From Ophelia neglecta (Eukaryota): a stretch of DNA of 64,000 nt. Numbering within the stretch: the stretch's first letter is position 1; each line of letters opens with the position of its first letter. A program made the position numbers and the translations under genes. Below are positions 1,190 to 47,224 of the stretch, one piece after another. The stretch spans positions 40,486,001 to 40,550,000 of the forward strand of contig OZ260664.1 in the NCBI GenBank assembly GCA_965285935.1. Direction: 5' to 3'. The notes beneath the pieces were generated by a model. The model saw only the letters and a program-made list of their open reading frames with translations, was not told where the DNA came from and searched no databases.

Positions 1190-1801
1190 TTATTCAGCTT
1201 TGGGTTCCCCTCCGTCTTCAGGAGGGGCTTCACCTTCAGTCTTGTCCAGACCTTCCTCCACCCCTGGGCCTCCCTCAGGTTCAGCAGACCCCTCCTTTGA
1301 ACCTTTAAGCTCCTTCCTTGTTTTCATACCTTTAAAGCCAGCCTGGATTTTAGTGGCTGCTTTCTCTACTTCCGGGTCATTTAGGTCAATGTCAATATCT
1401 TCTCCTTCTCCATCCTCAGGTTTGCTCTCTTTCCCCTCAGGTTTTTCTTCAACCTCTGGTTTGTCCTCCTTCTCAGGAGATGCCTCCTTGCTGGCAGCCA
1501 TTTCCTGTCTGGTCTTCATTCCTTTGAAGCCAGCCTGTATTTTTGTGGCTGCTTTCTCTACCTCCGGATCATTGAGGTCTATATCGATGGTCTCCTTTTC
1601 TGTGGCTTCTCCTTCCTGAACAGCTGCTGCCTCTGGCGCTTCCTCTCCAGTGGCCTTTGTGGCAGCTAATTCCTGGCGAGTTTTCATTCCCTTGAACCCT
1701 GCCTGAATCTTTGAAGCTGCTTTTTCCACCTCTGGATCAGATAGGTCTATGTCAACCTTTTCTTCTTCTGCTTCTTCGGGGGCTGCTTCATCATCTGCAT
1801 C
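1190..1801 (-). CDS. SPA17: SPA17-like terminal exon, three acidic + IQ modules
   Basis: Acceptor CTTTTTCAG. DADDEAAPEE..VDIDLSDPEVEKAASKIQAGFKGMKTR plus two further near-identical copies; stop at 1190-1192. Confidence 0.9.
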   Translation of the reverse strand, partial: DADDEAAPEEAEEEKVDIDLSDPEVEKAASKIQAGFKGMKTRQELAATKATGEEAPEAAAVQEGEATEKETIDIDLNDPEVEKAATKIQAGFKGMKTRQEMAASKEASPEKEDKPEVEEKPEGKESKPEDGEGEDIDIDLNDPEVEKAATKIQAGFKGMKTRKELKGSKEGSAEPEGGPGVEEGLDKTEGEAPPEDGGEPKAE

Positions 1802-13800: not shown

Positions 13801-16800
13801 TTTAATGTTTGTTATGCAATATTAATCTTTATCTTCCCCAAATGACATCATGTTAACCACTGATATCATAGCTGTGACAGAGTTGGCAGTAAATATATTT
13901 TAATAAATAAGTAGACATGGTTGAACGCATATATCTACATATTTTACTCTTCATTTAATTCTCAGTAATTGGCCAATTGCAGGCATTCTAGGACATTCTT
14001 ATATATGGTGACATGCGTGTGTTGAATTGCTCATAAAAGTACAAGAAGTGAGAGCAACATGGCAGTTTGGGCATGCAAAGATGGCTTGATGACTCAGAAA
14101 TACAGCACCTATGCACTTGTCTTACCCCCAACACTTCCTATAACCATACCAGCCTCCCTAGATCTGTCTCAAAACAACATCCCAGCCCTTAGCTCCACTT
14201 CAATGGCCACTCACAGAGAGGAAACAGGTTACTACCCCTAACCAGACAAACTTCAACCATCTTTTTCCAATTCACAGTAAGGTGGTTACACACATCAGCA
14301 TCCATGTCATTACATTCATGTCCCCACATCCTACCACTATTAAGACACCCCTGAACTGTCTCCTACACAATCAGCCCACACTGATGGACCGATCTGTTCC
14401 ACATTTTCCATCAACTTAAATCACTTTTCCTGTAAAATTGTGTATGCCACCCTCCATTTTAAGATGGCTCCCTAGCTAAGTCCCAAAAGGACATTTTTTC
14501 ATAAACATATAAAATCCGAAAACTCAGAAGGTTCTTTATATTTTACTTTTCCCTAAATGAAATAAAATAAAAGGATCATGCACTTTTTAATAGTTGCTGA
14601 TTTCCCCATCCACATATACTTCCATAGGGCAGAATTTCTTTTCTAACATTACTTCTAAAATTAACAACTTTACTACCCTCCCCCCCCCCCCCCCCCCCAC
14701 CCAACCCAACACCCAAACCCACCCCCAGGAAACAGTAGCCTTCTATTATCACTAATAAATGTTTTTAAATCACTTCTATACCTCTGTGTTGAGGCTTTTA
14801 AAAATCCAAATATTTTTAAGACTAGAAAGTTGAACAGTGACACATCCACAGACATCAGGTTACTGCCTTGGCCTCGTAAGCTAGGCTAAGGAAACAGACA
14901 TGACTTTTATTTGCCACCAGTGGTTCTCTCCACTACAGAGAACATGCCCTATTGATGGCCACTTATTTTTTTACATATGAAACAATTGGTCTGGTAAAAT
15001 AGGGAGGAATTCCTAATCAGCCAGTTTATGAAATCAATTCCCATTAGAACAGTGAGGGTCCCCACCTGGTGATCACAATTCAATGGCTGATACTGAATTT
15101 CCAAGTCAGAAAGGTCATAAAGGTCATAAGGTTCAACAAGACCAGACACATACCAACCGGTACATTCATTTTCATTAAAATTTGTATGCAGCAAACCTAA
15201 TGGACTACTTACATTTCAGAAACACGGTCACATCAGACAATTAGTTTTTGTAGAGTCTGATACAGAAATTATGTTGCAATTTGCAACATAATTCTGTATT
15301 AGACATTACATGTGATATCCATCCATGTCCAGTTATCAAGCTTAATTTTTGTTAATCAAATTGGCAATGGATCAATTAGTTCTTAATGGATAACTTTGTA
15401 ACCTTTGTACCAACTGCCTTTCATTGATACATTAAATAATGCCATTTGCCATTGTGGGTCACCAAACAAATGCAATTACATGTACATATCATGTACTTGG
15501 CATACATCTGTTCATAGCGAAATGATATGGAACACATAATTTATATTGAAAATTTATAATTTAAATGTAAAATTGTATGATAGATCTTGTAGACAATATA
15601 CATATTCATAGAAACATGCCCCAATAGTTAGGTAGCCTTCTATATTACACAAGAGGTCATTGGTCAATCTGGTAATTATTTCAGGTACCTTGAATCAAAC
15701 AAAGCTTGTTACATTAATGCCAAACTGATTTGATTTTTAAGCAGTAATGACTGTGACGCAGGGAATGTAATTCAATTTATATACCAATATTTCTGATGGC
15801 ACCAAAGTTTGGTATTACTGTTACTCTAATAAAATTATGCCAATTCCGATGTAATTGATATCAATAATAGTTGACAATATAAATCAAACCTTTTTACACT
15901 GACTTACAATGATAGAGTCTTCAAACAAGCAAAATATCTATATTGTCCTACCTGTCACAGTGGTTTGACCCCTAGCATGTTTTCTCCCATTCACAATTTC
16001 ATATTTGCCTTTAGCTCTGATACATGGACATTCCTGGCTCATACAATGTCCCATTATCAGTTGGTACTCAAATCAGGTAACAAGGATAAAAAATCACTCA
16101 ATGTTCTGACACCTCCAAACCCTTGGTGCCACACTGGTACACTGAATAGCAGATATTGTATGACATGTCACATCTTCATCAATCACAGTGCTTCTCAGGA
16201 GATTCTCTGCACTTCCTGGTGGACAAGTGGCTATATTAACATTTTTGCTGTGTTTCTTGGTCAGTGATATGTAGCAATCCAGCAATAACTGGTTTTGTAT
16301 TCATAAAATATCTTAAAAGCCACTCTACCTATTTCAATGGACAGAACATTGTCCTATCTAACAAACAATCACATAAAATCCATTTCACTTTCATAAATAT
16401 TCAGAGTTTTCTAATGTACACATTATAACACAGCCTAGAACACCATATTGCAATTTGAACCTGTTTGAGGAAGAATCCAAAATCAGCTGTGATTTAGTAT
16501 ACATTAATTTTTCTCCTTAAATGAGTTATACACATTCAAGGCACACTTTTAAATCATTGCTATTGTGGAACTTGCAACATTTACTAATCAGTCCATTTGG
16601 CAATTACTGAGCTAAAAATCCTTAAAATTCCCATGAACTGTGTTGTGTTCACTCTCCTGCCTTGAGACTGGTGGTAGCTCAGTCCATCCTATGTTATCAG
16701 CTAACCAGTGTGTTTGCTCACATGCAATCCAGAGTAGACCCCTGCAGGCGACAGAGAGGTGTCTACTGTTTGGTTCCAAGCTTTATGTGACTAGTTGTGG

Positions 16801-19800: not shown

Positions 19801-22800
19801 CATTTATTCGCCACATTCATTTAAATTTATGCGAGATACAAGCCTGATATTGTTGCTCTTACGTCATGCATATTGCCTTCACATTGAGTTACATGACCCA
19901 AGTTTTCCTGGTTATAATCCTCCTGACAGGCCTGAGGCTCAGGAACAAAACACTGATACACACAGCCATAACAAAACTAAATCCAATTGAGCCGAATAAT
20001 ATATAATTATCAAAGATGTATATACCCATGGGTATATACATCGGTATACACATCTCTGTAATTATGCATCAACATAAAGTCAAAATATGGATGCATATTA
20101 CACTTTCCAAATATCAAGATGCATGGCATGTAGGCCTCAATGCATTCTTACCTGTCTTACACAGTACTGAGGTGATGTTACATCCCATGACTCTACCCTC
20201 TTAAAGACATCTTAAAACAATAGACCACGCACTGTGCAGGGAAACCCCAACCGGGATCAAACAATATGTATTCCAAATGACCAAATGGGCTGGACATCAA
20301 TTTTCTATTGCAGTGCTCCCAGCCACCATTTCACTAACAGTAACTTCAAGCCAGATGACGTTTTCAACTATATAACATATGAGTACTTATGTTCAACAGC
20401 TGTGGCCAAATAGCAGATCTTCAAATCCCTTTCTGGCCCTCCCAGCTTTGTCGCAATGTGCCCAGATCATCAACCATGCATGAACAGGCATCTAAATTTA
20501 TTTCCAAGATGATCCATCAGTACCTTTCTTGACAATTTAATTTACCATTCTCACCAAAGAGCAATCACATATGAGCATCTTTTTGGGGATTTGTGCTTGG
20601 ATAACATCACAGATAAGGGAACATTGTAAAACAGATCTCATTATTAGTGATAGTTATACATGCGCACATAGTGGTTTAAGATACCTCATTTGAAGAAGAC
20701 ACCGAAATGTGTACCGTTGACAGAAACCTTCTTTATAAGAATAGTTATGGTTACAAAAACTGTTCACAAACTGTGCAAGTGCAAGTAATGTACAGACTTG
20801 GTCTTTGTTAGTTATTAATATATGATCTGATGATAGAGTGTGGGCATGCTTGCGCTAGCACTGCAAAGGCTTTACATCAATATAGCTACAAGGAATCTGG
20901 CATTATACCCCTAATTCCAGCATAATTATCTCGTACTGTGATATTAATCAATATCAGTCTATTAAACCTACATACAAATATATAAACGGACAATGCAGTG
21001 AGTGTCTGACTTGTAATACCTGGTAATAGGAGTGGGTGTAGGAGCATATGATGCCAGTACATTGGAAGCTTATGCCATCAAATGATATTCATGTACAACT
21101 TGATAAACTAGTCAGCTAGAGTCGTAATAACACTAAATGACTACATGTGAAGTTGATAATTTACATCAGGATCTAAGCCTGATTATACTTAACATGGCCT
21201 TAGTATTAAGGTGTACAAAAATGTCAGCCCCAGTATCCTACTAAATGTAAGGCTTAACTGGGCTGGTCTGTTAGTGGACTTGTCTATTGATTAACCAGTG
21301 TCTGTAATTATGTTGGTTTAGGGCATTGAGTCCTGTCACACCCTGTTATGAGGAGGAAAAATACACAGTGAAACCTGTGTATTAAGACCCCCCCCCCCCC
21401 CAAGGAACTGGCAAGTATAGGTCTGATTAATGTGGTGGTCTGTTTATACAGGTTACTTTATAGTGAATGAGTATCATATGGTCTTCATATTAATGGTCTG
21501 AATTGGCAGGTGGTCTAAATATAGAGATGGTCTTTAAGGCAGGCTTCACTGTACTTAAGCCCAGTCATGAGAGTTTTGTATGTATACCATTCCAATGAAT
21601 GATAAGAGTGTGTGGGTCACTCAAATCTTGTTATACAGGTAACATATGTACTTCTACATTTTCAGTAACTCAAATGGTGCAACTAGAATAGCAATAGAAC
21701 ATTGTCATTTTAAAGTATTATACTTAATTTCACAAATTTCAAAGATGGACAAATAATCTAATAGATACAGTGTTACACAAATAACCTTCTCATAGCACCC
21801 AAGGTTACTGACTGATTTTGTAAAAAAAGGCAACCATGAGCACTAAAATGCTGAGTGTATACACCATACACATGATACACTTGAGATATTCAAATGGTGG
21901 TCATTCATATGTCCATTGCACAGATGGTTTATTTTATGCCATATTAAATGTATATCACTGTCAACGATAGATCAGGTTGACACAAACATATAGATATTCA
22001 GCTAATCAGAAGAGCATTTAACCAAACACATAAACCAAAATATGTTGTTCCATAGCTACTTTCAATACAATAGCATGCATAAATAGGTTTATTTATGGCA
22101 TACAATATATTCCTGCATATTTTCTCTTATAAAAAATGTTAAAAGCAGAAAGCAGTATTAAAATTTACAAATTAGAGCCCTCTGGTGAAAGGAAGAAGCA
22201 CAACAGGTACTTCTTCAGACCATCCTGCAGGCCTGAAAGGAAGGCTATTTAGCACATGTAACATGTAGCTGTTCATGTAACCATAATACTACTGATGAAT
22301 TATAATGTCCCATTACCATTAGATGACATCTGATAAAACCGTCTTGTACCAATTTATCATACATGTAACAGCTTGGATCATTTAAGGATATAATGTCCCT
22401 GTTATACTGTTTAACAAGTTTGTAAAAATATGATGAATTATGACAAAGGCAAAAGGTTATATAACAAGTAAACTTGAAGCATACACAACCATGTGCATAA
22501 TACAAGTATGCTTGTGAGTGATTTTGTTTTTTGAATACTGACCCAGACATTGGTTATTTAAAAAAGTTCCTGGTTCCTGCACATGTGTATACATTAAGTA
22601 GATGTCTCCAGACCCTACTGGCAAGTACTGTATAATCACTTGGACTGCTAGTCAATGTCTGAGCTGCTGAGCAAAACACTTGTTAGCCGTCTCAGCCCCC
22701 AAACAAGCAAAACACTTTTTTTAACTGTAAGAAGGTTTCCGGTAATGTTTGTATACAAAACTCTGGTCATGTAAACTAACATTATTTTCTGATTTACCTG

Positions 22801-25800
22801 CACTCACACACACTTAAACAAAGTGTATTTTTCACAGATCTGCAGGTCTGGTTCAATTCTACATGTTCTTTAAATATGGTGCCTTCATTATAACCATGTT
22901 CAAATATACATGATGTTTATTTAAACATGATGGTCACGCAGATAAAATACCATTGAGTTACAATAATATTTTCTCGGTATCTATGGGATCCACGAGTAAA
23001 CTAACAATATTGTGTGAGTGATTTTAGAGAGAGGTGTGTTTCTTGAACATGACGATTTCACCGATGATTTTGGTGCCATGTACTTGATGTCATGTAGTCT
23101 GCCAAACACTTGTCATACAGCAACAAAACAGGCCAACTCCAGTAAAACTTTCACCAAATGTAGACTGATATATCATCCCCAATAATCAGTCACTGCTTGA
23201 TGTTGTAAGGCAATGTTTAAAACTGATCTTATTATAACAGGTAATGTGCTGAATAATCAATCATTACCCATGTGTACCTGTACATGCAGTATAATTCATG
23301 ATGGTTGCCTTACCTTCAACTTGATCCCCTTCTTTATCCTTTCCATATTCTCTGTCTTTGATAAGTTGAACATCTTCCCTATGGACATTTTCCAGTAAGC
23401 CTTTGCCATATTCGGCCATGTGATTACCTTCAACCTTGACACTCTCGTTGCCTTTAAGGGCTTCCTCGTCACCATCTTCTTCAGACTTATAAGACTGTCT
23501 TGGACTAGGTGAATGGCTTAATCGTAAACTGCTGTCTACCTTGCCCTCTTTTACATGTTCCATGTAAATTACCTTTTCTTTGACATTGCCCGTACCTCCT
23601 TTTTCTCGTTCTCCAATCCAAGCTGGGGGTGAAACTGGAGCTTCGCCCTCGTCACTTACATCTGCCTTTTTCTGAATCTGCTGTGCAGCCCCTTTCACAT
23701 AGCCATCTTTATCCATTGGGGGATCATAGAGTTTGTGTGGGCTCTGCTGAGTAGCAATTCCCAGTTTGCGATCCAGTACTGAGAAATCTGGCTCAGGTGA
23801 TCGCTGCTTTTTCTGTTTTGTATCAGGATCAATGCCAAAGAATTCTAATTTAGCCCTTTCTTTATCTCTTCGCAACGTAGCACTCTTGTCCAAGGAGCTA
23901 TAATCTCCAGGTCCTTTATCATTTGGAGAAAGGTTTCCTTTCTGTACATGTCCATTTTCACCCGCCTTTTCTGGACTTCTTTCTGGTTTTGGTGGAGCAG
24001 CACTTTGGGTGTTAGCAGATGAAGATTTGACTATTTCTTCACCTCCATGTTCATCCCCCTTTAGACCTCCTTTTTCAGCCTTGGTTGGTGTGTAAGGAGC
24101 ATCTCCCTCCTTGTCCTTGACTTCTTTGCTCGCGTTACATCCCATTTTGAAAATTCAGTTAATTTCCAAACACTTTCCAATAAAAAGAAAACACCCCACA
24201 GTTGCACTATCCTCAGTTCAGGCGAAACGATACATCAAAAGCAGGCAAAATTCTAGGTTTTCAAAAATTTAGCAGTAACTCATAGAGTTATCCACGAGAA
24301 AGAGCTCTGTCTGTCATCTTGGAAATGTGATACTAACAGAAACTCAATTACTTCCTTAAAAACACTTCTATGCCATCACTAGTCACAAGTTCTTCAATGG
24401 CTAAAAGGAATATATAACACAACTGTAAACTGTCAATGGAAAACTGGTTAGATTTACCTCCTAAAGTCTAGTGATCAATGTTTTAATTTCTTTGTATTTT
24501 ATAAATAAAACTAATGCACTCATACTTCATGCTGAGGGGGTAAACCACATTTATTTCAGAGGATTTGTCTTCATCTACATACATGTACACTGACGTTGGC
24601 TAGAGGGTTTGTTTTCACCTACATACATGTGTATGTTCACTGATGTTGGCCAGAGGATTTGTCTTTACCTACATACATGTGTATGTTCACTGATGTTGGC
24701 CAGAGGATTTGTCTTTACCTACATATATGTACACTGATGTTGGCCAGAGGATTTGTCTTTACCTAAATGTTTATGTGTACTGGGTACTAGTACTGGTGTT
24801 CACCATAGGATTTGTCTTCCCCTATGTAGGGACTGATGTTGGCCAATAATTATAAAAGTTGCATGAGCATGTGACTAAACAGTTGGCTAGAGTGTGGCAA
24901 GTGTTATTTACAATGTTGCTTTTATCAATTTTATGTATATCATTAATTGAGTTTGTTACAAACTATTCACTTAGTAATAAACTTTGTTTGCCATGTGACA
25001 GTGAGTCAATGACATCCTTACATTTTTTCCGTTTAATACATGTGTGGGTGGTGCACTAACTGATATTTTTCACTGTATGAGTCACAAGCTGCATTGAAAT
25101 CTGCAGTCATGGATGTTTTGAAAGCTAGAACTTTATGAATTTTATTCTACTAACATTTTAGAACCCTTGCAACAAAGTTAACCTAATTACTTTTCTCGGC
25201 CATACCCCAACTGTAATACAAATCTCAAACATAACCAAACTGTAATGGAAAAGCAAAAATGACCTTCAAGGGGTGATCAAATTCAAGGACACCAAAAGTA
25301 AACTGGCCTGGACATTGCACATTTCCACTTAAATCACATAAAATGTCTCTCTTTTCTGAAACCCTTGTGAAAAAAAACCTCTTCCATATATTACCAAGTT
25401 ATTAAACTTTATGATATAGATATAGCAATAGATAGAGTGGAGCAATGGTAATATATCAAATTGATTTTATCATGACATTTATCAGCCTGGCTGGTTTACT
25501 TTTACTTGATACATTATGAACCAGAACTCCTAACATAATTGACCTCCATACAGTGTTTAGATCCAGACTTCATCTATCTCTCTCTCAGCTATATCAAAGA
25601 TAAGCTATCATTTTAGTCCTGGTCTTCTAAGCCTGCTCCAAGTCACAACAAACAATTCTTCAAGCACATTTTCCAAATGCCTTTAGAATAGTCTATTAAT
25701 TCTGATGTGTACAAATTTAGAACTAATCTTGTATTATTAAATAGATATAAATAGTTGGGTAAACTTTTGAAAATAATTCTTGTTTTATAGCCAAAACCAA

Positions 25801-28800
25801 ATAAAAGCATTGGAAGGGACATAGCGCTCACATATTATTCAGTCACAAATTGTACTTTTTCAGGTAATAGTTACCAAATTTATGATCAAAGAACAGCTCC
25901 GCTCATATTCATGCAGACATACATGATGTATATAGAGCAGGATACTATTACCAAGTGTTTTTCAGGCACATACAACCACAGAAATAGCAAAAAGGTGCTG
26001 GCATAGCTTCAACAAAACAACATTGCTAACCAGTTAAATGGGGCCATGTGAATTTCAATATGATTGGACCTATGTTTGCAACATAAGAGGTACATATTGT
26101 AAAACTAGATCAGATGACTCATGGACCCCTCAGACAGGCAAATCAACACAACTGGACCACTAATAGTTCCAGCATAAGTTACATCATGTATAGACAGTTA
26201 TTGAGGTTTTAGCCTTTGAGATAGGCAAGCCCAGCCATAGTGTTATTTGCAGACATGACAACTGAAGTTAGGGGATGCTGACCTCTTTTGTGCCAGGGAT
26301 ATGCAATATGATAGCAGTCAGCTAACTGACTAAACAAATTCAAATTATGAACTTAAGCCTATAATATGAACAATAGGCTGGATTTGACTGTGATTATACA
26401 TGCATATTTGCTAACAATAAAGGTATGCCACTATCAATTATAAACACAAGTGGCCGAGACCTGATGAGGGACCTGGAGCATGGACCACATTAGTCATTGT
26501 CAACTATTAAGGCCGGACTCCTCAAGCAAATTATATACAAAAATGATTACAACAGTGGGCACAGACACAAACATACATTGACAAAGTTTCTAAGATGGTG
26601 TACAAAACTGTCTGCCACTTTAATATACATGTACATGTACATGTACATGTATACATGTACATACACTAGTGCCGGAAATACACTGAACAGTCAATACTAC
26701 GGGGAATGTCAGGTTAAATCAACTGTTTTCTAGCCTATGAAAGATCCAAACGAACTTTTCAAAATTATCCTAACATTTCTAAAGGGTCTCATTGTAGCAT
26801 TTATTTCCATTAGGTTTATATATATATAAACAACTATGTGAGAGCAGATGGACTGGGTTTACACAGAATGGACCTCATGATGTGACACACCCATCAGTGT
26901 ACCAGAGGATGTTAGCATTTTAAACAGACACTAGTGAGCAGCTAGTTTTTGTACTGATACAATTGAATGAGAGTGTTTAAATTATATCTCAGGGACTGAC
27001 ATTTTGATAATTTGGACTGCAGGAGTCTAGAGTCAAAGAAAGCCCCTTTGCTTGGACTTCTTATACTGTTATGTGAGAAATGTGTAAGTTTGCTGGCCTG
27101 ACCTGCTAAATCCACACCTACTATAAATAGCTAGCAGATCTGCATCACTCAGCTGTCTGTTTATACTGAAAGAGCCATATTCTAGGCAAACACGAGCAGC
27201 TCTGCCAGATTGTAACTTCTATGTTCTTACTCTTGGTATATATTCCCTGATACAGTAGACGAGATATTTTGAGATTTAAGTTTAGAAATTCAACAAATAT
27301 GGGGGACATCAAAGTTTTGGTAATTTGAAATTGATGTACTGTAAAAATAAGTGAGTTTTGCTTTAATATAGTATTGCTTCTTGTGCTGTCTGGATTTTTT
27401 CAGGCCAATTCAGTTAAAAATTGAGTAAAAGTTATGTACTGGAAGAGAGTTACAATAAATTTTAGTAACTGTTGTTATTTGTGAATCATCCAAATTCCTT
27501 GGAGCAAGATAATTGATTTATTTCAGTACTTGTTGATTTAGCGCCCTGTTCTGGTGTGGATTGCCCCGTCACATGGAGGCCTATTATCTTATCTGGTTTA
27601 GATACAAATTTGGTAACTTTTCCCAGGGAAAAAGCAACTGATATCTTCTTATCTGTGTTTGGTTGATTATTTGAAAGGATCTTATAGGTTGTTACTGTTT
27701 ATTTCAAAAGTTCATAACCCTTGACATATTATTTTGTCATACGCTTGGTGTTTTATTTTGTCATACCCTTCGTGTTTTATTTTGTCATACGCTTTCTGTT
27801 TTATTTTGTCATACCCTTCGTGTTTTATTTTGTCATACGCTTTCTGTTTTATTTTGTCATACCCTTCGTGTTTTATTTTGTCATACGCTTTCTGTTTTAT
27901 TTTGTAATACCCGTGGTGTTTTATTTCGTCATACCAATGGTGTTTGATTTTGTCATACCCTTGGTGTTTTATTTTTCATACCTTTGGTGTTTTATTTTTC
28001 ATACCTTTGGTGTTTTATTTTTCATACCCTTGTTATTTTATTTCGTCATACCAATGGTGTTTGATTTTGTCATACCAATGAGTTTGTTACTGGTATCATA
28101 CTTATAACAGCAGAAACACTACCAATAGGTCCCTCTATATATGTTCATCATAAATTATAGAATTGATTTTCATAATGGCTTAAAGATTAAAATATTCCAA
28201 TATTCATGTGGTTCATTCCATCATATGGAAATTAAAGATTGCCTGTGCATTATATATTCTGCTTTAAACATGTAGGACAGCATTACATTAGGCAGCTTAT
28301 GCAGATGCAACAACATCCTTATTCGGCTCATTGGAAAGTACGGTACATTAAGGCAAAAACACTGCAACACATGTACCAGTATGCTGGTACATGTATATAC
28401 AATGTGTAGAAATTCTTGTCATACTAATTTCTATAGTAAATTCTGATAGCATTCCTAAATATAAACTACCTATCATATTACAAACTATTTATAAAATTTC
28501 TTATATAAGTACTCTTGCAACAGTTTAGGAGAATGTCAGTTCTGACCATGGCAGCACATATATCTATAAGCTCTATCTTCACGCTCAAAATTCATTTTAG
28601 TCATGCATAAACTTGAAAGAAGCATTCTTATAAAGGGTCCACATGCGATACAGATGTGTTTCTGTGGGCATTACCAAATGCATTCCTGTCATTGGACCTT
28701 AAAGATGAAGGTAGGGTCCTATTCAAGGTCACCATCAGACTTCCTTCATATGACTTCCAAGTTGTACGTGTACTTACAAAATAGATCATACAAATTTGTA

Positions 28801-31800
28801 GAGCCAACTTCTTATTGTACAGAGCAGAAGATTTAAAAAAAAATCTTTTCCAAAACTTAACCTTGAAGTGGAAAGTCAAGGCTAAATTTAAAGTAACCAT
28901 TGGCTGAACATGGCTGTTGTGTTTATGATTATATTATACCACATAGTAGTTCTCAGCTCTCTCATCTCTTGGATGTAGTCTAATGAACTACCTCACTGTG
29001 GCAAATAAACTAAGGTAAACTTTTATTATGTAAACTGTTTATTATTGTCTTAGAAAGGCTTGCTAATAACTACCAGACACTTCTGTGCCTAACCATGTTG
29101 TATTTTGTGCTGCTGTCCAGTTCACACATGGATGTTGAAAAAAAAACCATGACGTTGAGGGGATTGATATTTTAAACTTCTAAATCTAAGGAAATATGTT
29201 ATGGGGTTTGGTTGGGTATGTTACCAATATTTATATTTACCATAATTGTATGAAAGGAATGAGCCATTAATCATAATAACAAATTTAATCAATATCTATT
29301 AAGGCCATTTTTAAATGGAAAAGTTCAATAAAAGTATCAGACCAAATCGAGAGTAACACAATGGATCACTTGAAGGACGCATGATTACTTCTCTTTAGTG
29401 AAAAGTTGGTAAACTGAACACAATGTCCCTCTTAGCTAGTATTATTCCTGAGCACTCATAAATCCCAGGTAGGATTGGAAATTTCATTTATTCAACAGAT
29501 TATAAATATTTTTTCATAATGAGACAATTTAGTGTATGTCCAGTTGTTCCATATTTATAATGAGGATAATGAGGCTACACATAGGGCAAAGCTGGCCACA
29601 CATAGAGCAGAACTGGCCACACATAGGGCAAAGCTGGCCACACATAGGGCAGAGCTAGCCACACATAGGGCAAAGCTAGCCACACATAGGGCAGAACTGG
29701 CCACACATAAGGCAGAGCTGGCCACATATAAGGCAGAGCTAGCCACACATAGGGCAAAGCTGGCCACACATAGTGCAAAGCTGGCCACACATAGGGCAGA
29801 GCTGGCCACACATAGGGCAGAGCTGGCCACACATAAGGCAGAGCTAGCCACACATAGGGCAAAGCTGGCCACACATAGGGCAGAACTGGCCACACATAAG
29901 GCAGAGCTGGCCACACATAAGGCAGAGCTAGCCACACATAGGGCAAAGCTGGCCACACATAAGGCAGAGCTAGCCACACATAGGGCAGAGCTGGCCACAT
30001 TTAAGGCAGAGCTGGCCACATATCGGGCAGAGCTGGCCACACATAGGGCACAGCTGGCCACACATAGGGCACAGCTGGCCACACATAGGGCACAGCTGGC
30101 CAAACATAAGGCAGAGCTGGCCACACATAGGGCAAAGCTGGCCACACATAAGGCAGAGCTGGCCACACATAGGGCAGAGCCAACCTCTTTCAAAATATAA
30201 TGAAATGCAGCCTACCTCAAAACATACTTAAAAGTTTAATAATTTGATAATAAGCGTGCATGTAAATATGTTTTTTCAAGAAACAAAATAAATGCCTGAA
30301 TTATATTTCTGACATGAGCTGTCAACTAATCATTTCTGGTTCATAGTTGCCTAAACAGCTCATTGTCAGACAGAATAATGAAACCACAACTGCTTTAATT
30401 GAATATGATGACCAATTTTATGTAATAGGCTGATGTTAATGTAAAGAAATATATTCCTATCAATATTTCAACATTTATGAAGCCTTCATGTGCAATTAAA
30501 GTGAAAGCAGTGCAATACAATAGGTATTAATCTTGTACCAGGAACATTTATAGATGTGAAGTACATGTACCTGATGTATAGTGGATTTTTGTGTATTTGT
30601 TCAGGTGAACTAGAATGTATGAGATGTTATCTGATGTCCTATTATCATCTGTTAGCATGCTTGCCTGTGTTATATGTAATACCTATACCACCCAGTTACA
30701 TGTACATGTGTCCCTTATGGCCATACAACTTTAATATTTGCCTATAGTACATGCTCCAGGGGTAACATCATTTACATAATCACCACAAGTGTGCACCATT
30801 AATAGGCCAAAATCCTTAAAGACAAACCCTCTGATACTGTGTTCTCTTCCACTCTTAAATGCCAACTTTCTCAATCCAAACACTATATACTGAATTTCTT
30901 GAAAGAATTGACTGTGTGTTTACCCAAAGCATAAAGTATGTGCACTTAATTCAAAACCCATTAAGTCTACTCTTAATTTACATCATCTTAAGTCAAACTT
31001 TAGTATGAAACTTACTTTTGTATCCAATGTACATGTAACACAGAAAGTTATCCCAATAAGAATGCAACTTGTGCTGAACTCCCACGAAAAAGATTTAGGG
31101 CGTGCTTGCTGAATATTTTCAGCTAGCAGGGCAGCGCAGCACTCCCTCCGAAAAGTATGAAGTCTGGCACTTGTATGTGCTATAGATGTGTATATCCTAC
31201 AGGCAGAGATATGCCAGCCGTCCACATCTGGTTTGTAGGACTAGCTATCAGTTTAGGTTATCCTATCAGTGCACATCCAGTTTGTTTCCCAGTGTACTAC
31301 CAGTTGGTCGTGCAGGTTATTTGTTGCACTACCACTGTAAGCTATCTGCTACCACAGGCCTGTCCTTAACTAAGCTTATGGCCGCTTCCTTTCACCTGTA
31401 ACCTAGAAACTTTTTATGGCTGACTACATCAAAGTACAAGTAGCTTCAATAATTAACATTCAAATATACATACATGTTCATGTATAGCTATTTGCAACAC
31501 AACAATTTTGCAAAGTAAAAAAGTACTGAAAACCTTACAAAATCAAACAGGTAGACTTGGGTCTATATAAATAGTTAAACTGGCATACAAAATTGCCTCT
31601 AATGTATGGAACATATTGAACTAAGGTAATTTGCTGATAGCTGTGTTTACTGCCTATGACTTTAACCAACCTCTAGCAAACAGTGGTGACGTGTATTGCA
31701 GGGAACCTTAATACACAGCTTCAGCCCATTTTGGAAACTATAATGGGCCCCTATGCTAGCATATTTAGCACACTAGTCCGATCCCCATAACTCATTGGCT

Positions 31801-34800: not shown

Positions 34801-37800
34801 AGTAGCACATTTACCAAGTAACACAAAAGTACGGTTACCATGGCATCTGCCAGAATATTCCATATGTAGCTACACACGTTACCTATTGGAATGCAAAGTT
34901 TAACAACGATATCTATTGATACCATGTTTGTAAAAACCTCAAATTTGAAACATATAAGGGAACGTTCATTATTTATGGCCGGGGGGGGGGGGGGGGGTGG
35001 TAAATTTGGGGGGGACAGTTTTTTTTCAACCCATTTCCATGGGGGGGACAGTTTTTTTTCAACCCATTTCCATGGGGGGGACAGTTTTTTTTTAGTCTAT
35101 TCACAGGGTGCGCAATTTTATTTAGAAATATATATTGTACAAAAGTGTGTAGTGAAACTGATAAAACTTAGCCAAATTCTGTCTTTGATGGGGGGGGGGA
35201 GGGGGGGGCAATTTTTTTCCCACCTATTTCCAGGGGGGGGGGCAATTTTTTTTTGACGTACTCATTTCAAAAATTTACCACCCCCCCTGGCCATAAATAA
35301 TGAACGCTCCCTAAATAGGAAGAAACTGGCACACACAGGTTTGCAGCTACGATAATCTTTGTCAGTGAAAGTATCAACCTAGTCTGCACTCCTATCAAGG
35401 CAGCCATTAAGGTGCAAATCTCAAGAGGGATTTTGCAAGCGTTAAGGGGTCTTTGAGGAATAGGTTTTAAAAAGCCAGGATTAAACATCATAAGCAGCAG
35501 GTGGTTTGTACTTACTACACTCATCTATCAACAGTTTTTTGTACAGGCAGCTTTTCACACCAAAAATCAGACTTTTTCATAGCTGCCAAGACCCATCTCA
35601 GACTAAAAGTAAAGTATTAAATCACCTGAAACTCAAACTCATGAAAGGTTTTAATTAAAGAGAGTCCATACATGGAACGGTACAGTTACTCAAAATATAA
35701 TCAAAGCATCATGCAAAATGGCTGTGAACATAGCATTATTACAAATGATCTGAGCCGGCCTAGGATAGGTCAAGTATGGCCACCCTTAAATCCAACAAAG
35801 AGTGGCCCTACATTGCAAGTGGCCCTCCTTTAGAGGTAATTTAACATGAAAAAGATAGGAAATGGGAATTTAAAAACTAACATGCCATCGCAGGTGGCCC
35901 TTCATCAGAAGGGGCCTAGATCACAGGGACCACTGTATTGTCTGGGTCTGCCAAATCAAGTCAGTAGAAAACCGATGCATAATGGTTGATGAAGAAGTGG
36001 GCTCCAGATCCATGTTGCCATGGGGACATATCCCAGCAAACTTTATCATATGAAGGGGGGGGGGGGGGGGAGGATGCATGTATGGTTACACTGGCAGGTT
36101 AAATGATGTTCTATGCTTTATTTTGTGTATTATCTTGGCAAAAGGCAGGTATAACCATACAGGCCTGTTTGTAGATAGTTTATAAATCTAAAGTTTCTAA
36201 ATGCAGTGAATGCATTGAAGGGGACAGGTGGTCACTTGTGGATGAATAGTGCTATGGGCTGTGGGCATTGATGCCCTGGGTAATATATTGCCTGTGCTGA
36301 GACCATCTACCCTGCTCACACTGCCTTGTGTTACTTATTGGCTGAGCCATATGGGATGAAGATAAGAGTCTGCCAGCAGTGACCCAACAACAGCAGGAAG
36401 GACCTGTGAGATTATAGTGTCACAGTTCTCTATGTTCTCCTTCACAGGCATGTGGGTGGGTGATACCTATTCATAGCCAACTGCCAAAGAACCTTACCTG
36501 GTGTGCCAGTGCACATTTAGGAGGGGATCTGTTATCTGTTATTAAAAATGGACTGGTGATACATGTATGTATATGCAATATATATAGAGGCAGGAGACAT
36601 TCACGTAGACACTGGGACAAAGATCCACAGGTAGACAGACAGACAGACAGACCAGACAGTCACATCTCAGTAAAAGTACCTATCTACCTTTTCATCATCA
36701 GAGGTGTCAAGTGTAGATCAAACATACCAGTTAGTGAATATTTATTATAATTATTATAGATTATCACTCCAGTATATTGCCGAGGAGCTATAACAAGGGT
36801 TAAACAATTGATTTACACAGAAACTGTAAATGGCAATAAACATGAATTACTGGTACTAAAAATCCAGGACATTACTGAATTACTGGTACTAAAAATCCAG
36901 GACATATTGATCCCAACTGTTTGATTGCTTAATAGCTGAGTCTGCAACTTTAAAACTATTTTTCAGCTATTATTATGGCCCTTGTACCAAGAAAAGGAAC
37001 AAAACAGGATAGGGATTGTAGTTGAATAATCAAAAGTAGCCAGGACAGAAAGATGTTGATTGTCTTAGCTTGATCATCACCAACTATGCAAAAAGTTCTA
37101 AATTGACACGAAACAAAAGTACATGTAGCAACATTATTATGTCAGAGAGGCAGCTTTCTGATTTTGTCAATCGAGTATTATTGATCAACCAACCTGTGTT
37201 TCCAATTGTATGTTTAAGGCTGCTGCATCCAAATCCCATTTGCTACTAAGGAATTTCTGCATTCACTTGATAATTAATATAAAGACTAATAATTCAGAAA
37301 CATGTGCTGCAGCTTAGAAACTTCTAGAATCATCCACATATCTTTAATCCAACAGAGCACACAATGTAGAAGACAGCTAATATATCAGGACCAGAAAACC
37401 AGAAAACTGACTCCTCCGCTATGACAAAATACATCTAGGCAGATGACTAGAGGACCCTTATACCTGGATTACCAGGTATATGGGACTACATGTACACACA
37501 TCTTTATACACGTTGATCTATAGGTGCGTAAGTACACCATTAATAGTCATTAGTGCCAATGCCAGAAGCTTGGCATTAGACATTCAGTAATTGGTCTGGA
37601 TCCCATGCACTTCTGAGAGTATGATCAGCCTCTTTCAGAAAATGACATTTGGTACATAAACAAACAGCTTGTTAGCAATTATTGCTTTTTGTCTAGGGTA
37701 GAATCAGATTTATGGCAGTCACAAACTGCAACATCGCTGTCCTGAAAAACAAACCACTCAAAGAATATAGGTTCAGCTACAATACTTTATAACCCAATAA

Positions 37801-43800: not shown

Positions 43801-44928
43801 TGCAAAATCATGTTATTGGTTTATTGCTTAATGCTTGGTCATGCATGGCTGATCACTATGGTCATGTGACTAACAAGACCATAACATGTCTTGTTTGTAA
43901 ACAAACAATTAGCTTATGGGCATGTTTAAAATCCCGTATTTGAGTAAAAAAGAAAATGCTAAGAATGAAGATAAACACACCAATGGATAGAGCAGATTTA
44001 GCTCTATCTAAAACAGTTAATTTTTAAAAATCACACAATTATGACATTTATCATCAACTAGGGGTTTGGTATATCCTTAAAAACATTAAAATAACCATAA
44101 CAATAAAATTAAATGGCGTTTTTCGTTTAAATTTTAAAATTGATGTATCTTATAATTTTTATATCTTGGAACTAAACTTCAAACAAATACATTACATCAA
44201 TTGATCCAACATAACTGCATAAGCTTTCATGGGGTGTATTGTCCTGCTTCGCAGGTTTCACACCTACCATGGCTGTGGCAATGGAACCGTTTAATAATTG
44301 GGTCTTCAATATGTAGCAAGAGAAAAACAGTTTTTGTATTCATTCAAATTCTAGGAAGCAATTTTTGGAGGTGGGAGGATTCTAGCCGCATAGAAGATGA
44401 AATATTTGTTAACTGAGATGTGGGCAATCTGAATCCCCTACCCCTCCCATATAATTTACAACACACAAAATTCCTTACTTTGCTAACGAAAAGCAGGTAA
44501 CTGTTTTAATTATTAATGAGAAATAAATAGGAATTTATATCTGATATGTTCGCCATTGCATTGTAAAAGTAAGAGGTGGTCAAATTCTCAGCCTAATATT
44601 GACGAGGGGGTCTCATGAATACTAGCCCGCTATTCGAAGGTTGATGTAACTGAACCATTTTGCTTAAAACTCTGATATTAACAGACCTTTAAATGTTCAG
44701 CCTTTTATATATGGCCTACCTACAATATTTCTCAAACAGTTGAAACGAGGAGAATGCATTAATATGGTACTTACCATTTTTCATTCTTAGCATGTTTTCA
44801 AAATAAACTGCACTGAAGGCGTAAATATCGCTAGGCTGTGCCCTCAGGACTTCCCGAGCCAAGCCCTCCAGGATATTTTGGAACCCTTTTGGGACTCGAA
44901 GTTTGGTGTTACTGAAAGGTACGGCCAT
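1190..44928 (-). CDS. SPA17: SPA17/Sp17-like RIIa-domain protein with expanded multi-IQ (PEP-19/neurogranin-like) tail; full gene span, 11 coding exons, about 983 aa
   Basis: Manual join 44928-44775, 11381-11311, 10621-10443, 9927-9768, 9134-8976, 7921-7748, 7366-7211, 6918-6298, 5825-5634, 3858-3385, 1801-1190. All introns are GT-AG and phases are consistent (1,0,2,0,0,0,0,0,0,0), total 2952 nt. The N-terminus and DRFYNN segment match Sp17. Confidence 0.85.
3385..3858 (-). CDS. SPA17: SPA17-like exon 10, acidic low-complexity linker without IQ
   Basis: 474 nt, EGVIPECADPSAD...SIEPKE, rich in E/D/A/P. Acceptor TTACAG, donor GAG|GTACAA, phase 0/0. Confidence 0.72.
5634..5825 (-). CDS. SPA17: SPA17-like exon 9, acidic + IQ module
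   Basis: NSTKQEE...EIDIDLNDPEVEKAATKIQAGFKGFKARKEVKSLK. 192 nt, acceptor ATTCAG, donor AAG|GTATAC. Confidence 0.82.
6298..6918 (-). CDS. SPA17: SPA17-like exon 8, two acidic + IQ-like modules
   Basis: 621 nt open frame GTSNPS...IDIDLEDPEVEKAALKIQSRFSKLK...IDIDLKDPEVEKAALKIQNRFSKSH...TRLGK. Acceptor TTTTCTTAG, donor AAG|GTATCA. Confidence 0.8.
7211..7366 (-). CDS. SPA17: SPA17-like exon 7, acidic + IQ module
   Basis: EPIQEK...EEIDIDLNDPEVEKAAIKIQAKFSKFKSRKSNLM. 156 nt, acceptor TTTCTAAG, donor ATG|GTGCGT. Confidence 0.78.
7748..7921 (-). CDS. SPA17: SPA17-like exon 6, acidic + IQ module
   Basis: DIGSKQ...EEIDIDLNDPEVEKAAIKIQAGFSRFKSKKQSPSTVQ. 174 nt, weak AAG acceptor, donor CAG|GTATTA. Confidence 0.78.
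8976..9134 (-). CDS. SPA17: SPA17-like exon 5, acidic + IQ module
   Basis: AEKAGEQDKPATQTEEADEEIDIDLNDPEVEKAATKIQAGFKGYKTRKDIASK. 159 nt, acceptor CTAACAG, donor AAG|GTAGGT. Not in the ORF track. Confidence 0.87.
9768..9927 (-). CDS. SPA17: SPA17-like exon 4, acidic + IQ module
   Basis: AGETEPHVEEADGDDAAEEVDIDLDDPDVAEAASKIQAGFKGYKARKEVQAMK. Acceptor TTTACAG, donor AAG|GTAGGC, phase 2 to 0. Confidence 0.9.
10443..10621 (-). CDS. SPA17: SPA17-like exon 3, two IQ motifs
   Basis: KPDVDPSDPQQQDAALTIQTKYRQFNAKKVVSEKKEEQAAVKIQAGFRGYQDRQRVKKL(R). Acceptor TTGTAG, donor AG|GTACAT, phase 0 to 2. Confidence 0.9.
11059..11277. repeat. 46-bp tandem repeat, about 4.7 copies, next to the exon-2 donor
   Basis: Unit ATGCTCTATGTGATGTGAATGTTAGGAGGTACTTTAATACCTTAAC. 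Confidence 0.9.
11311..11381 (-). CDS. SPA17: SPA17-like exon 2 (common acceptor exon)
   Basis: Acceptor TCTTACAG, 71 nt, (E)GGVDPAKQGALQEDRFYNNKAFE, donor GAG|GTAAAT. Matches Sp17 DPAEWG..VEDRFYNNHAFE. Too short for the ORF track. Confidence 0.9.
12463..12690 (+). repeat. Dispersed repeat; diverged second copy at about 42031-42240
   Basis: Both copies share ACATTAGGTGACATG, CCATTAC..ACAGT(T/A)ACTTT..AATAA(T)AAAGT and TTTTCCTT..ACAT.ACTTAATTGTTC blocks. Confidence 0.65.
13311..13600 (+). repeat. Dispersed repeat; inverted copy at about 51520-51660 and partial copy at about 34335-34400
   Basis: Similar pseudo-translations (ANHIFYLALLVQLTIFRFLP vs [22 protein letters not shown]) and a shared CTGGACAAAGTCAAA. 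Confidence 0.6.
15952..16054 (-). CDS. Putative alternative first exon C (MGHCMSQECPCIRAKGKYEIVNGRKHARGQTTVT)
   Basis: Start context ataATGG, 103 nt open to the phase-1 donor ACAG|GTAGGA. MGxxxS motif, three Cys and a basic stretch. Confidence 0.58.
18108..18180. repeat. 25-bp tandem repeat, about 3 copies
   Basis: Unit GGGTGTGTCCAGCGTGTGCCTGTGT. Confidence 0.8.
20152..20188 (-). CDS. Putative alternative first exon B (MGCNITSVLCKT)
   Basis: gtcATGGGATGTAACATCACCTCAGTACTGTGTAAGACAG|GTAAGA. 37 nt, phase 1, strong donor, acylation motif. Confidence 0.6.
21366..21551. mobile_element. Tc1/mariner-type MITE
   Basis: CAGTGAAACCTGTGTATTAAGACC ... GGTCTTTAAGGCAGGCTTCACTG|TA; same terminus as the 38165 element. 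Confidence 0.7.
23314..24145 (-). CDS. Putative alternative first exon A of the SPA17-like gene (277 aa, MGCNASK acylation motif), or a nested single-exon gene (293-aa ORF to 23264)
   Basis: Long hydrophilic ORF, start context aaaATGG, MG-C-x-x-S-K motif. Strong phase-1 donor GAAG|GTAAGG at 23314/23313; further phase-1 donors at 23428 and 23278. Confidence 0.75.
24559..24846. repeat. 44-50-bp tandem repeat, about 5-6 decaying copies
   Basis: Unit GAGGATTTGTCTTTACCTACATACATGT(GTATGTT)CACTGATGTTGGCCA. Confidence 0.85.
27728..28080. repeat. About 24-bp minisatellite (TTTTATTTTGTCATACCCTTGGTG-like)
   Basis: Direct inspection; source of the FYFVIP repeat ORF. Confidence 0.9.
29575..30180. repeat. 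21-bp minisatellite, about 29 copies (GCTGGCCACACATAGGGCAGA)
   Basis: Direct inspection; produces the ATHRAEL-type repeat ORFs in several frames. Confidence 0.95.
34958..35311. mobile_element. PIF/Harbinger-type MITE
   Basis: TIRs GGGAACGTTCATTATTTATGGCC and GGCCATAAATAATGAACGCTCCC, TAA on both flanks (34955-34957, 35312-35314), internal G-run tandem repeats. Confidence 0.8.
38165..38342. mobile_element. Tc1/mariner-type MITE
   Basis: TA|TAGTGAAACCTG ... CAGGTTTCACTG|TA with internal AATTAGGG repeats. Confidence 0.75.
43643..43817. mobile_element. Fold-back (palindromic) MITE-like element
   Basis: Imperfect inverted arms of about 75 bp: AATAACATGATTTTG..GGGCGTTAC..TTATTAGCAGCCC..CATAGTCATAG and its reverse complement. 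Confidence 0.7.
44775..44928 (-). CDS. SPA17: SPA17-like coding exon 1: RIIa dimerization/docking domain
   Basis: MAVPFSNTKLRVPKGFQNILEGLAREVLRAQPSDIYAFSAVYFENMLRMKN resembles the Sp17 N-terminus (MSIPFSNT..RIPQGFGNLLEGLTREILREQP..I.AFAA.YFE.LL). 154 nt, phase-1 donor G|GTAAGT. Confidence 0.93.
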
Positions 44929-47101: not shown

Positions 47102-47224
47102 ATGGTGGACGAAGCTACAAAAAAAAATCTTGCCGAAATCCCTCTTTTAAAGACAAAGGCGGGCCCTCGTGATGGAGATTTATGGGTACAGAGACTCAAG
47201 GAAGAATACCAATCTTTAATCAAG
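47102..47224 (+). CDS. UFC1: UFC1 exon 1
   Basis: 123 nt, MVDEAT...EEYQSLIK, donor AAG|GTATTA. Confidence 0.95.

Follow-up and report, generated by a model that had tools for sequence, protein, structure and literature searches.

Can one gene deliver the same calmodulin-binding protein either to the axoneme or to a membrane by changing only the exon with which it starts? The question is raised by the Sp17 (SPA17) gene of Ophelia neglecta, which lies on the minus strand of the stretch analysed here, 64,000 nucleotides (nt) of contig OZ260664.1 that we call the window. Its first exon encodes an RIIa domain, ends in phase 1 and is separated from exon 2 by an intron of 33,393 nt, as a preliminary description of this DNA had reported (33.4 kb). 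The same description drew attention to three ATG-initiated frames within that intron, starting at 24145 (MGCNASK), 20188 (MGCNITS) and 16054 (MGHCMSQ), and proposed that they are alternative first exons that would carry lipid anchors; its coordinates and sequences agree with the window base for base. Reading the sequence, we judge it probable, if well short of certain, that at least the long MGCNASK exon is used with exon 2 in this gene. We infer, for this species, splicing of the Met-Gly (MG) exons to exon 2 and use of the short micro-exons, as well as acylation, localisation and choice between tissues.

By comparison with two related species, the 277-codon MGCNASK exon is certainly coding and constrained. 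Matching open reading frames (ORFs) appeared in protein collections on a 1-kb Logan contig (L001; 86% identical) and on a 45-kb ENA contig (species 2; 56% identical), values that a later alignment put at 87% and 60%. Between the window and L001, synonymous divergence (dS) is 0.875, nonsynonymous divergence (dN) is 0.076 and dN/dS is 0.087; between the window and species 2, synonymous sites are saturated and dN is 0.30. MGCNASKE and about ten internal blocks are invariant in the three species. All three also have a GT donor in phase 1 at the same codon phase (GAGG/GTGAGT in L001 and GAAG/GTACCA in species 2, the slash marking the splice site). Conservation ends exactly at this donor, and the read-through tails beyond it are unrelated among the three. 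Upstream of the ATG, 147 nt are ~69% identical to L001 (102/147 aligned bases) compared with ~48% at synonymous sites, a level of conservation that fits a 5′ untranslated region (5′UTR) or promoter. A 50-bp tandem repeat (~4.5 copies) occupies 24557-24765, 410-620 bp upstream of this start codon.

The position of the long exon is conserved as well. A walk along the ENA contig places the RIIa exon of species 2 (48/51 residues identical, phase-1 donor G/GTAAGT) on the strand of the MGC exon, 20.1 kb upstream of it and next to the same upstream neighbour gene, so the nested arrangement is shared. The preliminary description had made its proposal depend on conservation of an MG-Cys motif with its phase-1 donor at related loci; the MGCNASK exon and donor are kept in three species, and in species 2 they lie downstream of the RIIa exon. 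No Pfam family was found in the 277-codon exon, and among 1.84 billion representative proteins it has no detectable homologue except the species 2 ORF. AlphaFold2, run on the 3-sequence alignment, gave a mean predicted local distance difference test score (pLDDT) of 54, with a mostly disordered chain and a few short helices at low confidence. An internal phase-0 donor at 23660 (GAT/GTAAGT, 23655-23663) was considered as the main route from this exon to the phase-0 IQ cassettes and was rejected as unconserved in the related species.

Which acceptor could such an exon use? Exons were mapped from open frames and splice sites on the minus strand of the window (Table 1), and searches were run with single exons or database proteins. 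Exon 2 is the sole phase-1 acceptor among the mapped exons: exon 3 opens in phase 0, as do the later cassettes, and exon 4 opens in phase 2. The phase argument thus points to exon 2 and to none of the IQ cassettes. Across the exon 1/exon 2 junction, G + AA yields Glu, and the three MG frames likewise all end in G in phase 1 and give a sense codon with the AA of exon 2. Each runs open to a GT donor and can be joined to exon 2 in frame, and every position and donor listed for them in the preliminary description proved correct. Exon 2 codes for the ‘DP..G..EDRFYNN’ segment of Sp17, in which 11-15 of 23 residues are identical to mollusc orthologues; a 46-bp tandem repeat (4.9 copies, 92% matches) at 11059-11282 starts ~30 bp past its donor. 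Nine further exons were mapped downstream. Nearly all of the cassettes are in phase 0, exon 8 has two donors and exon 9 two acceptors, so that very many isoforms are possible; annotated mollusc Sp17 orthologues do show many isoforms of the phase-0 cassette body.

Sequence comparison identifies the gene as the Sp17 orthologue of a lophotrochozoan. Exon 1 matches Pfam RIIa (PF02197) with E 3e-13 and 49.6 bits (cut-off 22.4), and it matches Sp17 chains of the PDB (7MY4, 9FQR and 8J07) with E 6e-18 to 1e-15; in solved axonemes, Sp17 forms part of the radial spokes. A mollusc orthologue, that of Ruditapes, aligns to mammalian Sp17 over residues 1-144, the exon 2 segment included. Together with the multi-IQ body described below, these RIIa matches bear out the initial assignment as a Sp17-like multi-IQ gene.

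Table 1 Exons, candidate start exons and an upstream conserved stretch of the Sp17 gene, in window coordinates
Feature	Coordinates	Strand	Description
Exon 1a (coding part)	44775..44928	-	RIIa docking/dimerisation domain; ATG at 44928, 51 codons + G, phase-1 donor G/GTAAGT
Fourth, weak candidate, MGFGCSS	37194..37239	-	15 codons + G; phase-1 donor ACAG/GTTGGT; Cys5/Ser6
Conserved stretch 5′ of the MGCNASK ATG	24146..24292	-	Putative 5′UTR or core promoter
Exon 1b, MGCNASK	23314..24145	-	277 codons + G; donor AAG/GTAAGG; Gly2/Cys3/Ser6/Lys7 dual-acylation consensus, then mostly disordered conserved region
Candidate exon 1c, MGCNITS	20152..20188	-	12 codons + G; donor CAG/GTAAGA; sequence unique in window
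Candidate exon 1d, MGHCMSQ	15952..16054	-	34 codons + G; donor CAG/GTAGGA; three Cys + basic cluster, type of bivalve MG exons
Exon 2, shared acceptor	11311..11381	-	Starts AA (phase 1) after pyrimidine tract + CAG; phase-0 end before GTAAAT
Exon 3	10443..10621	-	Two Sp17-type IQ motifs; phase 0 to 2; Pfam IQ E 1.5e-9
Exon 4	9768..9927	-	First acidic-IQ module; phase 2 to 0
Exon 5	8976..9134	-	Acidic-IQ module; phase 0-0 cassette
Exon 6	7748..7921	-	Acidic-IQ module; phase 0-0
Exon 7	7211..7366	-	Acidic-IQ module; phase 0-0
Exon 8	6499..6918	-	Two acidic-IQ modules; phase 0-0; second in-frame donor makes 6298 the last exon base
Exon 9	5634..5846	-	Acidic-IQ module; alternative acceptors make 5846 or 5825 the first exon base, both phase 0
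Exon 10	3385..3858	-	Acidic low-complexity, no IQ motif; phase 0-0; inferred solely from its open frame and splice sites
Last exon	1190..1801	-	Three acidic-IQ modules; stop TAA at 1192-1190

In relatives, annotated gene models make the exchange of an RIIa exon for an MG exon real. A query with the exon-2/3 region of a spliced relative (residues 52-136) returned annotated orthologues from oysters, Dreissena, Mya, Ruditapes, Haliotis, Patella and Pomacea, and two of the returned proteins, from Ruditapes and Solemya, start without RIIa. The Ruditapes philippinarum isoform X2 (XP_060585649.1) equals X1 (XP_060585646-8) except at the N-terminus, where a 27-residue MGNNFS exon replaces the 51-residue RIIa exon; this exon sits in an intron 1 of 33.4 kb, 22 kb from the start of the intron, has the phase-1 donor GAAG/GTTTGA and is joined to exon 2. 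Similarly, Solemya velum KAL5019500.1 begins MGGKLS, and its first exon ends in phase 1 (GAAG/GTAGGC) and is joined to exon 2, which lies 16 kb downstream. It is the placement of these two MG exons upstream of exon 2, and their joining to it, that establishes the exchange in relatives. In Crassostrea virginica, intron 1 spans 3.6 kb and includes only one long ATGGG frame; it begins MGTKFS, continues with a basic cluster, has a phase-1 GT and resembles the Solemya exon. This oyster frame (L007:6097-6196), apparently unannotated, precedes exon 2 by 650 bp. In oyster, exons 2 and 3 seem to be fused, and no MGTKFS isoform is present among the annotated oyster proteins returned. Intron 1 of Ruditapes also contains, upstream of the MGNNFS exon, two more MGxxxS frames, MGHVCSKS (L006:23294-23318) and MGSFLSIPAS (L006:30896-30926); both are unannotated and both have good phase-1 donors.

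Does the window gene have one alternative anchor or an array of them? Intron 1 contains 27 minus-strand ATGGG starts, and only in the frames at 24145, 20188 and 16054 is residue 3 or residue 4 a Cys; residue 6 is Ser or Thr in each of them. Across both strands of the whole window, the combined motif again occurs only in these three of 110 ATGGG sites. The intron count agrees with the preliminary description, which had called them the only such starts there. In 300 dinucleotide shuffles of intron 1, the mean number of such starts was 0.31, and three were never reached. In-frame stops stand 3, 4 and 6 codons 5′ of the three ATGs (for 24145, 3 codons, TGA at 24157-24155). Scored with a position weight matrix (PWM) of textbook frequencies, their donors reach 11.4, 11.0 and 9.1, compared with 3.1-10.0 for the ten mapped body donors, and are thus as strong as most of these or stronger. 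Each of the three exon regions occurs once in the window, and they have no mutual similarity beyond the first 12 bases, which 24145 and 20188 have in common. The fourth frame of Table 1, MGFGCSS at 37239, was missing from the preliminary list; its Cys is residue 5, outside the Cys3/4 criterion. Tandem repeats aside, intron 1 has no other ORF of at least 110 codons; minisatellites of 24 bp (14.6 copies, 27729-28076) and 21 bp (29 copies, 29573-30180) create spurious long ORFs on both strands.

In a test across four loci (Crassostrea, Solemya, Ruditapes and the window), the counts favour several MG starts at a locus. Among sense-strand MGxxx[ST] frames upstream of exon 2, 7/16 have a phase-1 donor with a PWM score of at least 5, compared with 1/16 for phase 0, 0/16 for phase 2, 0/14 on the antisense strand and a background of ~4% for short ATG frames with a phase-1 donor. 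The seven frames that pass are 24145, 20188, 16054, 37239, MGHVCSKS and MGSFLSIPAS of Ruditapes, and the annotated Solemya exon. For the micro-exons 20188 and 16054, the support that sequence offers is statistical.

Several results weigh against the exchange of first exons in this gene, or against parts of it. First, no transcript or junction of this species or its close relatives was found, and no spliced product with the 277-residue exon occurs in a collection of 5.8 billion proteins, which yielded only two genomic read-through ORFs; no homologue of this exon was detectable among the annotated proteins in the collections searched, and tblastn found no match to it in the Ruditapes, Solemya or Crassostrea loci. 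Second, all isoforms returned from oyster, abalone, limpet, Mya and Dreissena begin with RIIa. Third, the thresholds of the MG-frame enrichment test were chosen during the analysis, and in species 2 no counterpart of the micro-exons, nor any MG-Cys frame, is present in the 5.8 kb between the long exon and the contig end. Finally, MGHCMSQ (His3) and MGFGCSS (Phe3) violate the PROSITE myristoylation pattern introduced below, and the annotated bivalve MG exons have no Cys at residue 3 or 4.

The first of these results could mean that the long exon belongs to another gene. It could open a separate gene that lies within intron 1 of Sp17, is spliced to unrecognised exons or to an acceptor other than exon 2 and lacks the IQ body, in which case the micro-exons would be irrelevant. 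Nested genes do occur at this locus in Ruditapes, no junction was found in this species, and no homologue of the 277-codon exon is detectable in annotated Sp17 isoforms of molluscs. We nevertheless consider a nested gene unlikely. The comparison with species 2, which covers 5.8 kb downstream of the long exon, reveals no other conserved coding block in the intron, and the intron has no further ORF of at least 110 codons, its tandem repeats excepted. Moreover, the phase of the 277-codon donor fits exon 2 and no other mapped body exon, MG exons that precede exon 2 in bivalves are indeed joined to it, and the arthropod igloo architecture combines an MGC start with the same IQ modules. We therefore retain splicing of the long exon to exon 2 as the probable arrangement.

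A stronger challenge concerns the short frames alone. Only the long exon might be real, with 20188, 16054 and 37239 being chance ATG-GGN frames followed by a fortuitous GT, so that the gene would have one alternative anchor and no array; to this we give a substantial chance, somewhat less than even. The short frames are just 12-34 codons long, no conservation of them was seen in the sequence compared, and the residue-3 rule of PROSITE is failed by two of the three (16054 and 37239). When the true exon is taken out, the two further motif occurrences compare with 0.31 expected, a p value of only ~0.04. On the other hand, the short window frames have strong phase-1 donors ending in G, and account for 3/7 of the remaining MGxxx[ST] frames compared with the background of ~4% (binomial p ~1e-3 to 3e-3), and no such frame occurs antisense or elsewhere in the window. 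Their sequences are not repeats, 16054 resembles the bivalve exons in its basic cluster, and Ruditapes intron 1 likewise has its two extra unannotated MGxxxS frames with good phase-1 donors besides the annotated one. Of the array of three anchor exons envisaged at the outset, the long exon thus stands as conserved and constrained, whereas the micro-exons are backed by statistics and have no counterpart in the 5.8 kb available from species 2.

A related question is whether the MG starts are lipid anchors at all. The PROSITE pattern PS00008, which reads G-{EDRKHPFYW}-x(2)-[STAGCN]-{P} once Met is removed, is permissive and frequent. MGCNASK and MGCNITS satisfy it, and the suggested match of all three frames to the myristoylation consensus holds for these two; MGHCMSQ is excluded by His3. 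Cys residues are available beside Gly2 in each case, as Cys3 at 24145 and 20188 and as Cys4, Cys9 and Cys11 at 16054. The bivalve MG exons lack Cys at residues 3 and 4 and would therefore be of a myristoyl-plus-basic rather than a dual-acylated type. The MG N-termini might instead be used without being anchors, yielding a soluble PEP-19-like calmodulin buffer that lacks RIIa, with the MG..S/T pattern incidental. PEP-19 and neurogranin function without myristate, the PROSITE pattern is weak, and acylation of the MG starts is a prediction from sequence. Yet every alternative start found at the four loci compared has Gly2 and Ser/Thr6, as have four arthropod igl proteins; MGCNASKE does not vary between species that are only 56-60% identical overall; and Cys3 or basic clusters follow, as in the two-signal anchors of Src-family SH4 regions, G-alpha-i, MARCKS and BASP1. 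A soluble, unanchored product accordingly seems to us quite improbable, and lipid anchoring of the MG N-termini is the reading that we carry forward.

What would such an anchor carry? The body exons contain ten copies of a 31-residue unit with the consensus EIDIDLNDPEVEKAA.KIQAGFKG.K.RKE and a mean column identity of 80%. Searched against the PDB, a profile of the ten units finds PEP-19/PCP4 (2N77) best, over residues 29-58 (30/31 positions, the whole acidic + IQ unit) with E 4.9e-7, followed by radial-spoke IQ proteins, neuromodulin, Sp17 and neurogranin IQ chains. Seven of the ten modules have IQAGF and the other three IQAKF, IQSRF and IQNRF; the calpacitin protein kinase C (PKC)-site Ser inside the IQ motif (IQASFRGH) is missing from all ten. 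With this tandem array of ~10 PEP-19/igloo-type acidic-IQ modules and the two Sp17-type IQ motifs, the body would be, by its sequence, a high-capacity binder of apo-calmodulin. The last exon has 409 homologues at E<=0.001. Among the 120 matches listed are RIIa-plus-module proteins from Logan assemblies, a flatworm and Oikopleura, together with arthropod proteins annotated igl or neuromodulin-like, and sequence comparison supports the view that the modules are calpacitin-type and homologous to those of the arthropod igloo/neuromodulin-like proteins. Automatic annotation has given mollusc Sp17 orthologues many unrelated names (abnormal spindle-like, triadin-like, DNA ligase 1-like and merozoite surface protein 9-like, among others), likely because the body is a repetitive acidic-IQ sequence.

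We propose that two or more promoters choose the N-terminal exon, and that at least two transcription and translation starts converge on exon 2. The upstream start would give the RIIa N-terminus, which could form dimers and bind to amphipathic helices in AKAPs or radial-spoke proteins. The preliminary description had sent this form to AKAP scaffolds; docking on radial spokes or AKAPs is the better formulation, given the place of Sp17 in solved axonemes. A start ~20.8 kb inside intron 1 would instead give MGCNASK and a conserved, mostly disordered region of 270 residues. Once its initiator Met is gone, this protein would carry N-myristate on Gly2 and palmitate on Cys3, and the MGC form could then concentrate a ten-module store of apo-calmodulin at membranes, as arthropod igloo and vertebrate GAP-43 do with theirs. 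Two or three further short MG exons (20188, 16054 and perhaps 37239) probably add variant anchors.

The window also holds neighbours of the Sp17 gene. A UFC1 gene of at least five exons (47099-51942, plus strand; Pfam UFC1 E down to 7e-17; 74-93% protein identity to the species 2 contig) stands head-to-head with it. Upstream, on the same strand as Sp17, lies a single-exon ORF of 645 residues (57140-59077, minus strand) with no Pfam family; it is conserved, and syntenic with a 713-residue ORF of species 2 (L004:16601-18742). An argument from SIAE-Sp17 synteny was dropped: the neighbours in the window are UFC1 and the 645-residue ORF, and the upstream neighbour in Ruditapes belongs to GDSL-lipase families, which we take to be other than those of SIAE.

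More broadly, local control of calmodulin availability is attributed to small IQ buffers, calpacitins such as GAP-43, neurogranin and PEP-19. The origin of this family outside vertebrates is obscure to our knowledge, and we know of Drosophila igloo as its only recognised invertebrate relative. The locus described here joins in one transcription unit a radial-spoke protein of cilia and sperm, Sp17, about ten copies of the calpacitin acidic-IQ module and igloo/GAP-43-like candidate lipid anchors. Should the isoforms be real, they would offer a concrete and testable origin for calpacitins and, in a calmodulin sink that differs in nothing but its address label (axoneme or membrane), a natural experiment. 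They would also be a reason to re-annotate the mollusc genes with names such as ‘abnormal spindle-like’, ‘triadin-like’ and ‘merozoite surface protein 9-like’. The conserved 270-residue region after MGCNASK, outside known families, is a new target in itself. In the literature, we found no description of Sp17 with acylated alternative starts, nor of a link between Sp17 and igloo or the calpacitins. As far as publications were searched, the suggestion that the arrangement is undescribed stands, but gene models of two bivalves in RefSeq and GenBank already contain the isoform, without comment and with misleading names.

How far might the evolutionary argument be taken? Igloo (Drosophila igl) has been grouped with GAP-43, neurogranin and PEP-19 as calpacitins (PMC9618489, through whose citation Neel and Young 1994 is referred to here for Drosophila igl). 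Mouse Nrgn adjoins Siae/Spa17 (PMC4098794), and zebrafish nrgnb was formerly named spa17 (PMC9415131). Arthropod igl/neuromodulin-like proteins consist of an MGC start and three modules (MGCNSSKD in Penaeus, MGCSSSKD in Scylla, MGCTPSQD in Oratosquilla and MGCHVTKE in Pycnogonum). The MGC first exon of Pycnogonum ends in phase 1 with G, and the first IQ exon of Penaeus requires a G from a phase-1 donor, its MGC exon lying outside the part of the locus analysed. No RIIa exon was found in the Pycnogonum gene or the 10 kb upstream of it, nor in the analysed part of the Penaeus locus, and arthropods as a test of an ancestral linkage between RIIa and MGC are uninformative or negative. Module homology, MGC starts and the adjacency of Nrgn and Spa17 allow, and do not prove, descent of calpacitins from anchored Sp17 isoforms.

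In its fullest form, the idea would be that the early-bilaterian Sp17 locus was a complex gene with one shared array of PEP-19-type acidic-IQ modules, to which the choice of promoter added either an RIIa dock or an acylated MG/Cys anchor. Fission or duplication of the anchored isoforms would then have produced arthropod igloo, vertebrate neurogranin and perhaps GAP-43 and PCP4, the whole calpacitin family would stem from Sp17, and some lophotrochozoans would keep the undivided state with several anchors. We offer this scenario tentatively and regard it as more doubtful than not. In the same spirit, the earlier statement that one gene does the jobs of SPA17, GAP43, neurogranin and PCP4 is an evolutionary hypothesis rather than a finding.

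Comparison with known systems places the gene between several families. Like arthropod igloo/neuromodulin-like proteins, it would combine an MGC N-terminus with repeated DIDLNDPE...KIQAGF modules, and the phase-1 end of the Pycnogonum first exon, which the phase-1 acceptor in Penaeus matches, is that of the MG exons here. Unlike the window gene, however, the igl-type proteins number 3 modules and lack the segment of Sp17 exons 2 and 3, and their IQ exons start in phase 1, whereas the window cassettes are in phase 0. The unit of acidic stretch and IQ motif is also that of the vertebrate calpacitins PEP-19/PCP4, neurogranin and GAP-43/neuromodulin. These have one module each in separate genes rather than ~10 in one, and the Ser of their PKC site (IQASFRGH) is replaced by Gly (IQAGFKG) in most window modules. 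GAP-43 itself is anchored by N-terminal acyl-cysteines and is only palmitoylated, not myristoylated. With mammalian Sp17, the window gene shares the N-terminal RIIa domain, the DP..G..EDRFYNN segment and IQ motif(s). By contrast, mammalian Sp17 has ~150 residues and one IQ, whereas the window body would reach ~900 residues if all exons are used, with ~10 extra acidic-IQ modules, and the window gene adds candidate alternative starts that drop the RIIa domain.

At their very N-termini, the MG exons resemble the SH4-type starts of BASP1/CAP-23, Src-family kinases and G-alpha-i, with MGxxxS(K) followed by Cys3 or a basic cluster, and the Solemya MGGKLS start presumably resembles that of BASP1. This resemblance spans 6-8 residues set by the consensus of the enzyme, so homology cannot be claimed from it. 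The exchange of an anchor for a dock through alternative first exons, by contrast, is a known device: in PSD-95 and SAP97 alpha versus beta, and among isoforms of AKAP7 (AKAP18), alternative first exons exchange a lipidation motif for a protein-docking domain on the same body. The window gene, whose product is unrelated to these proteins, would follow the same logic, with RIIa as the dock, a calmodulin-binding array as the cargo and maybe several anchors from which to choose.

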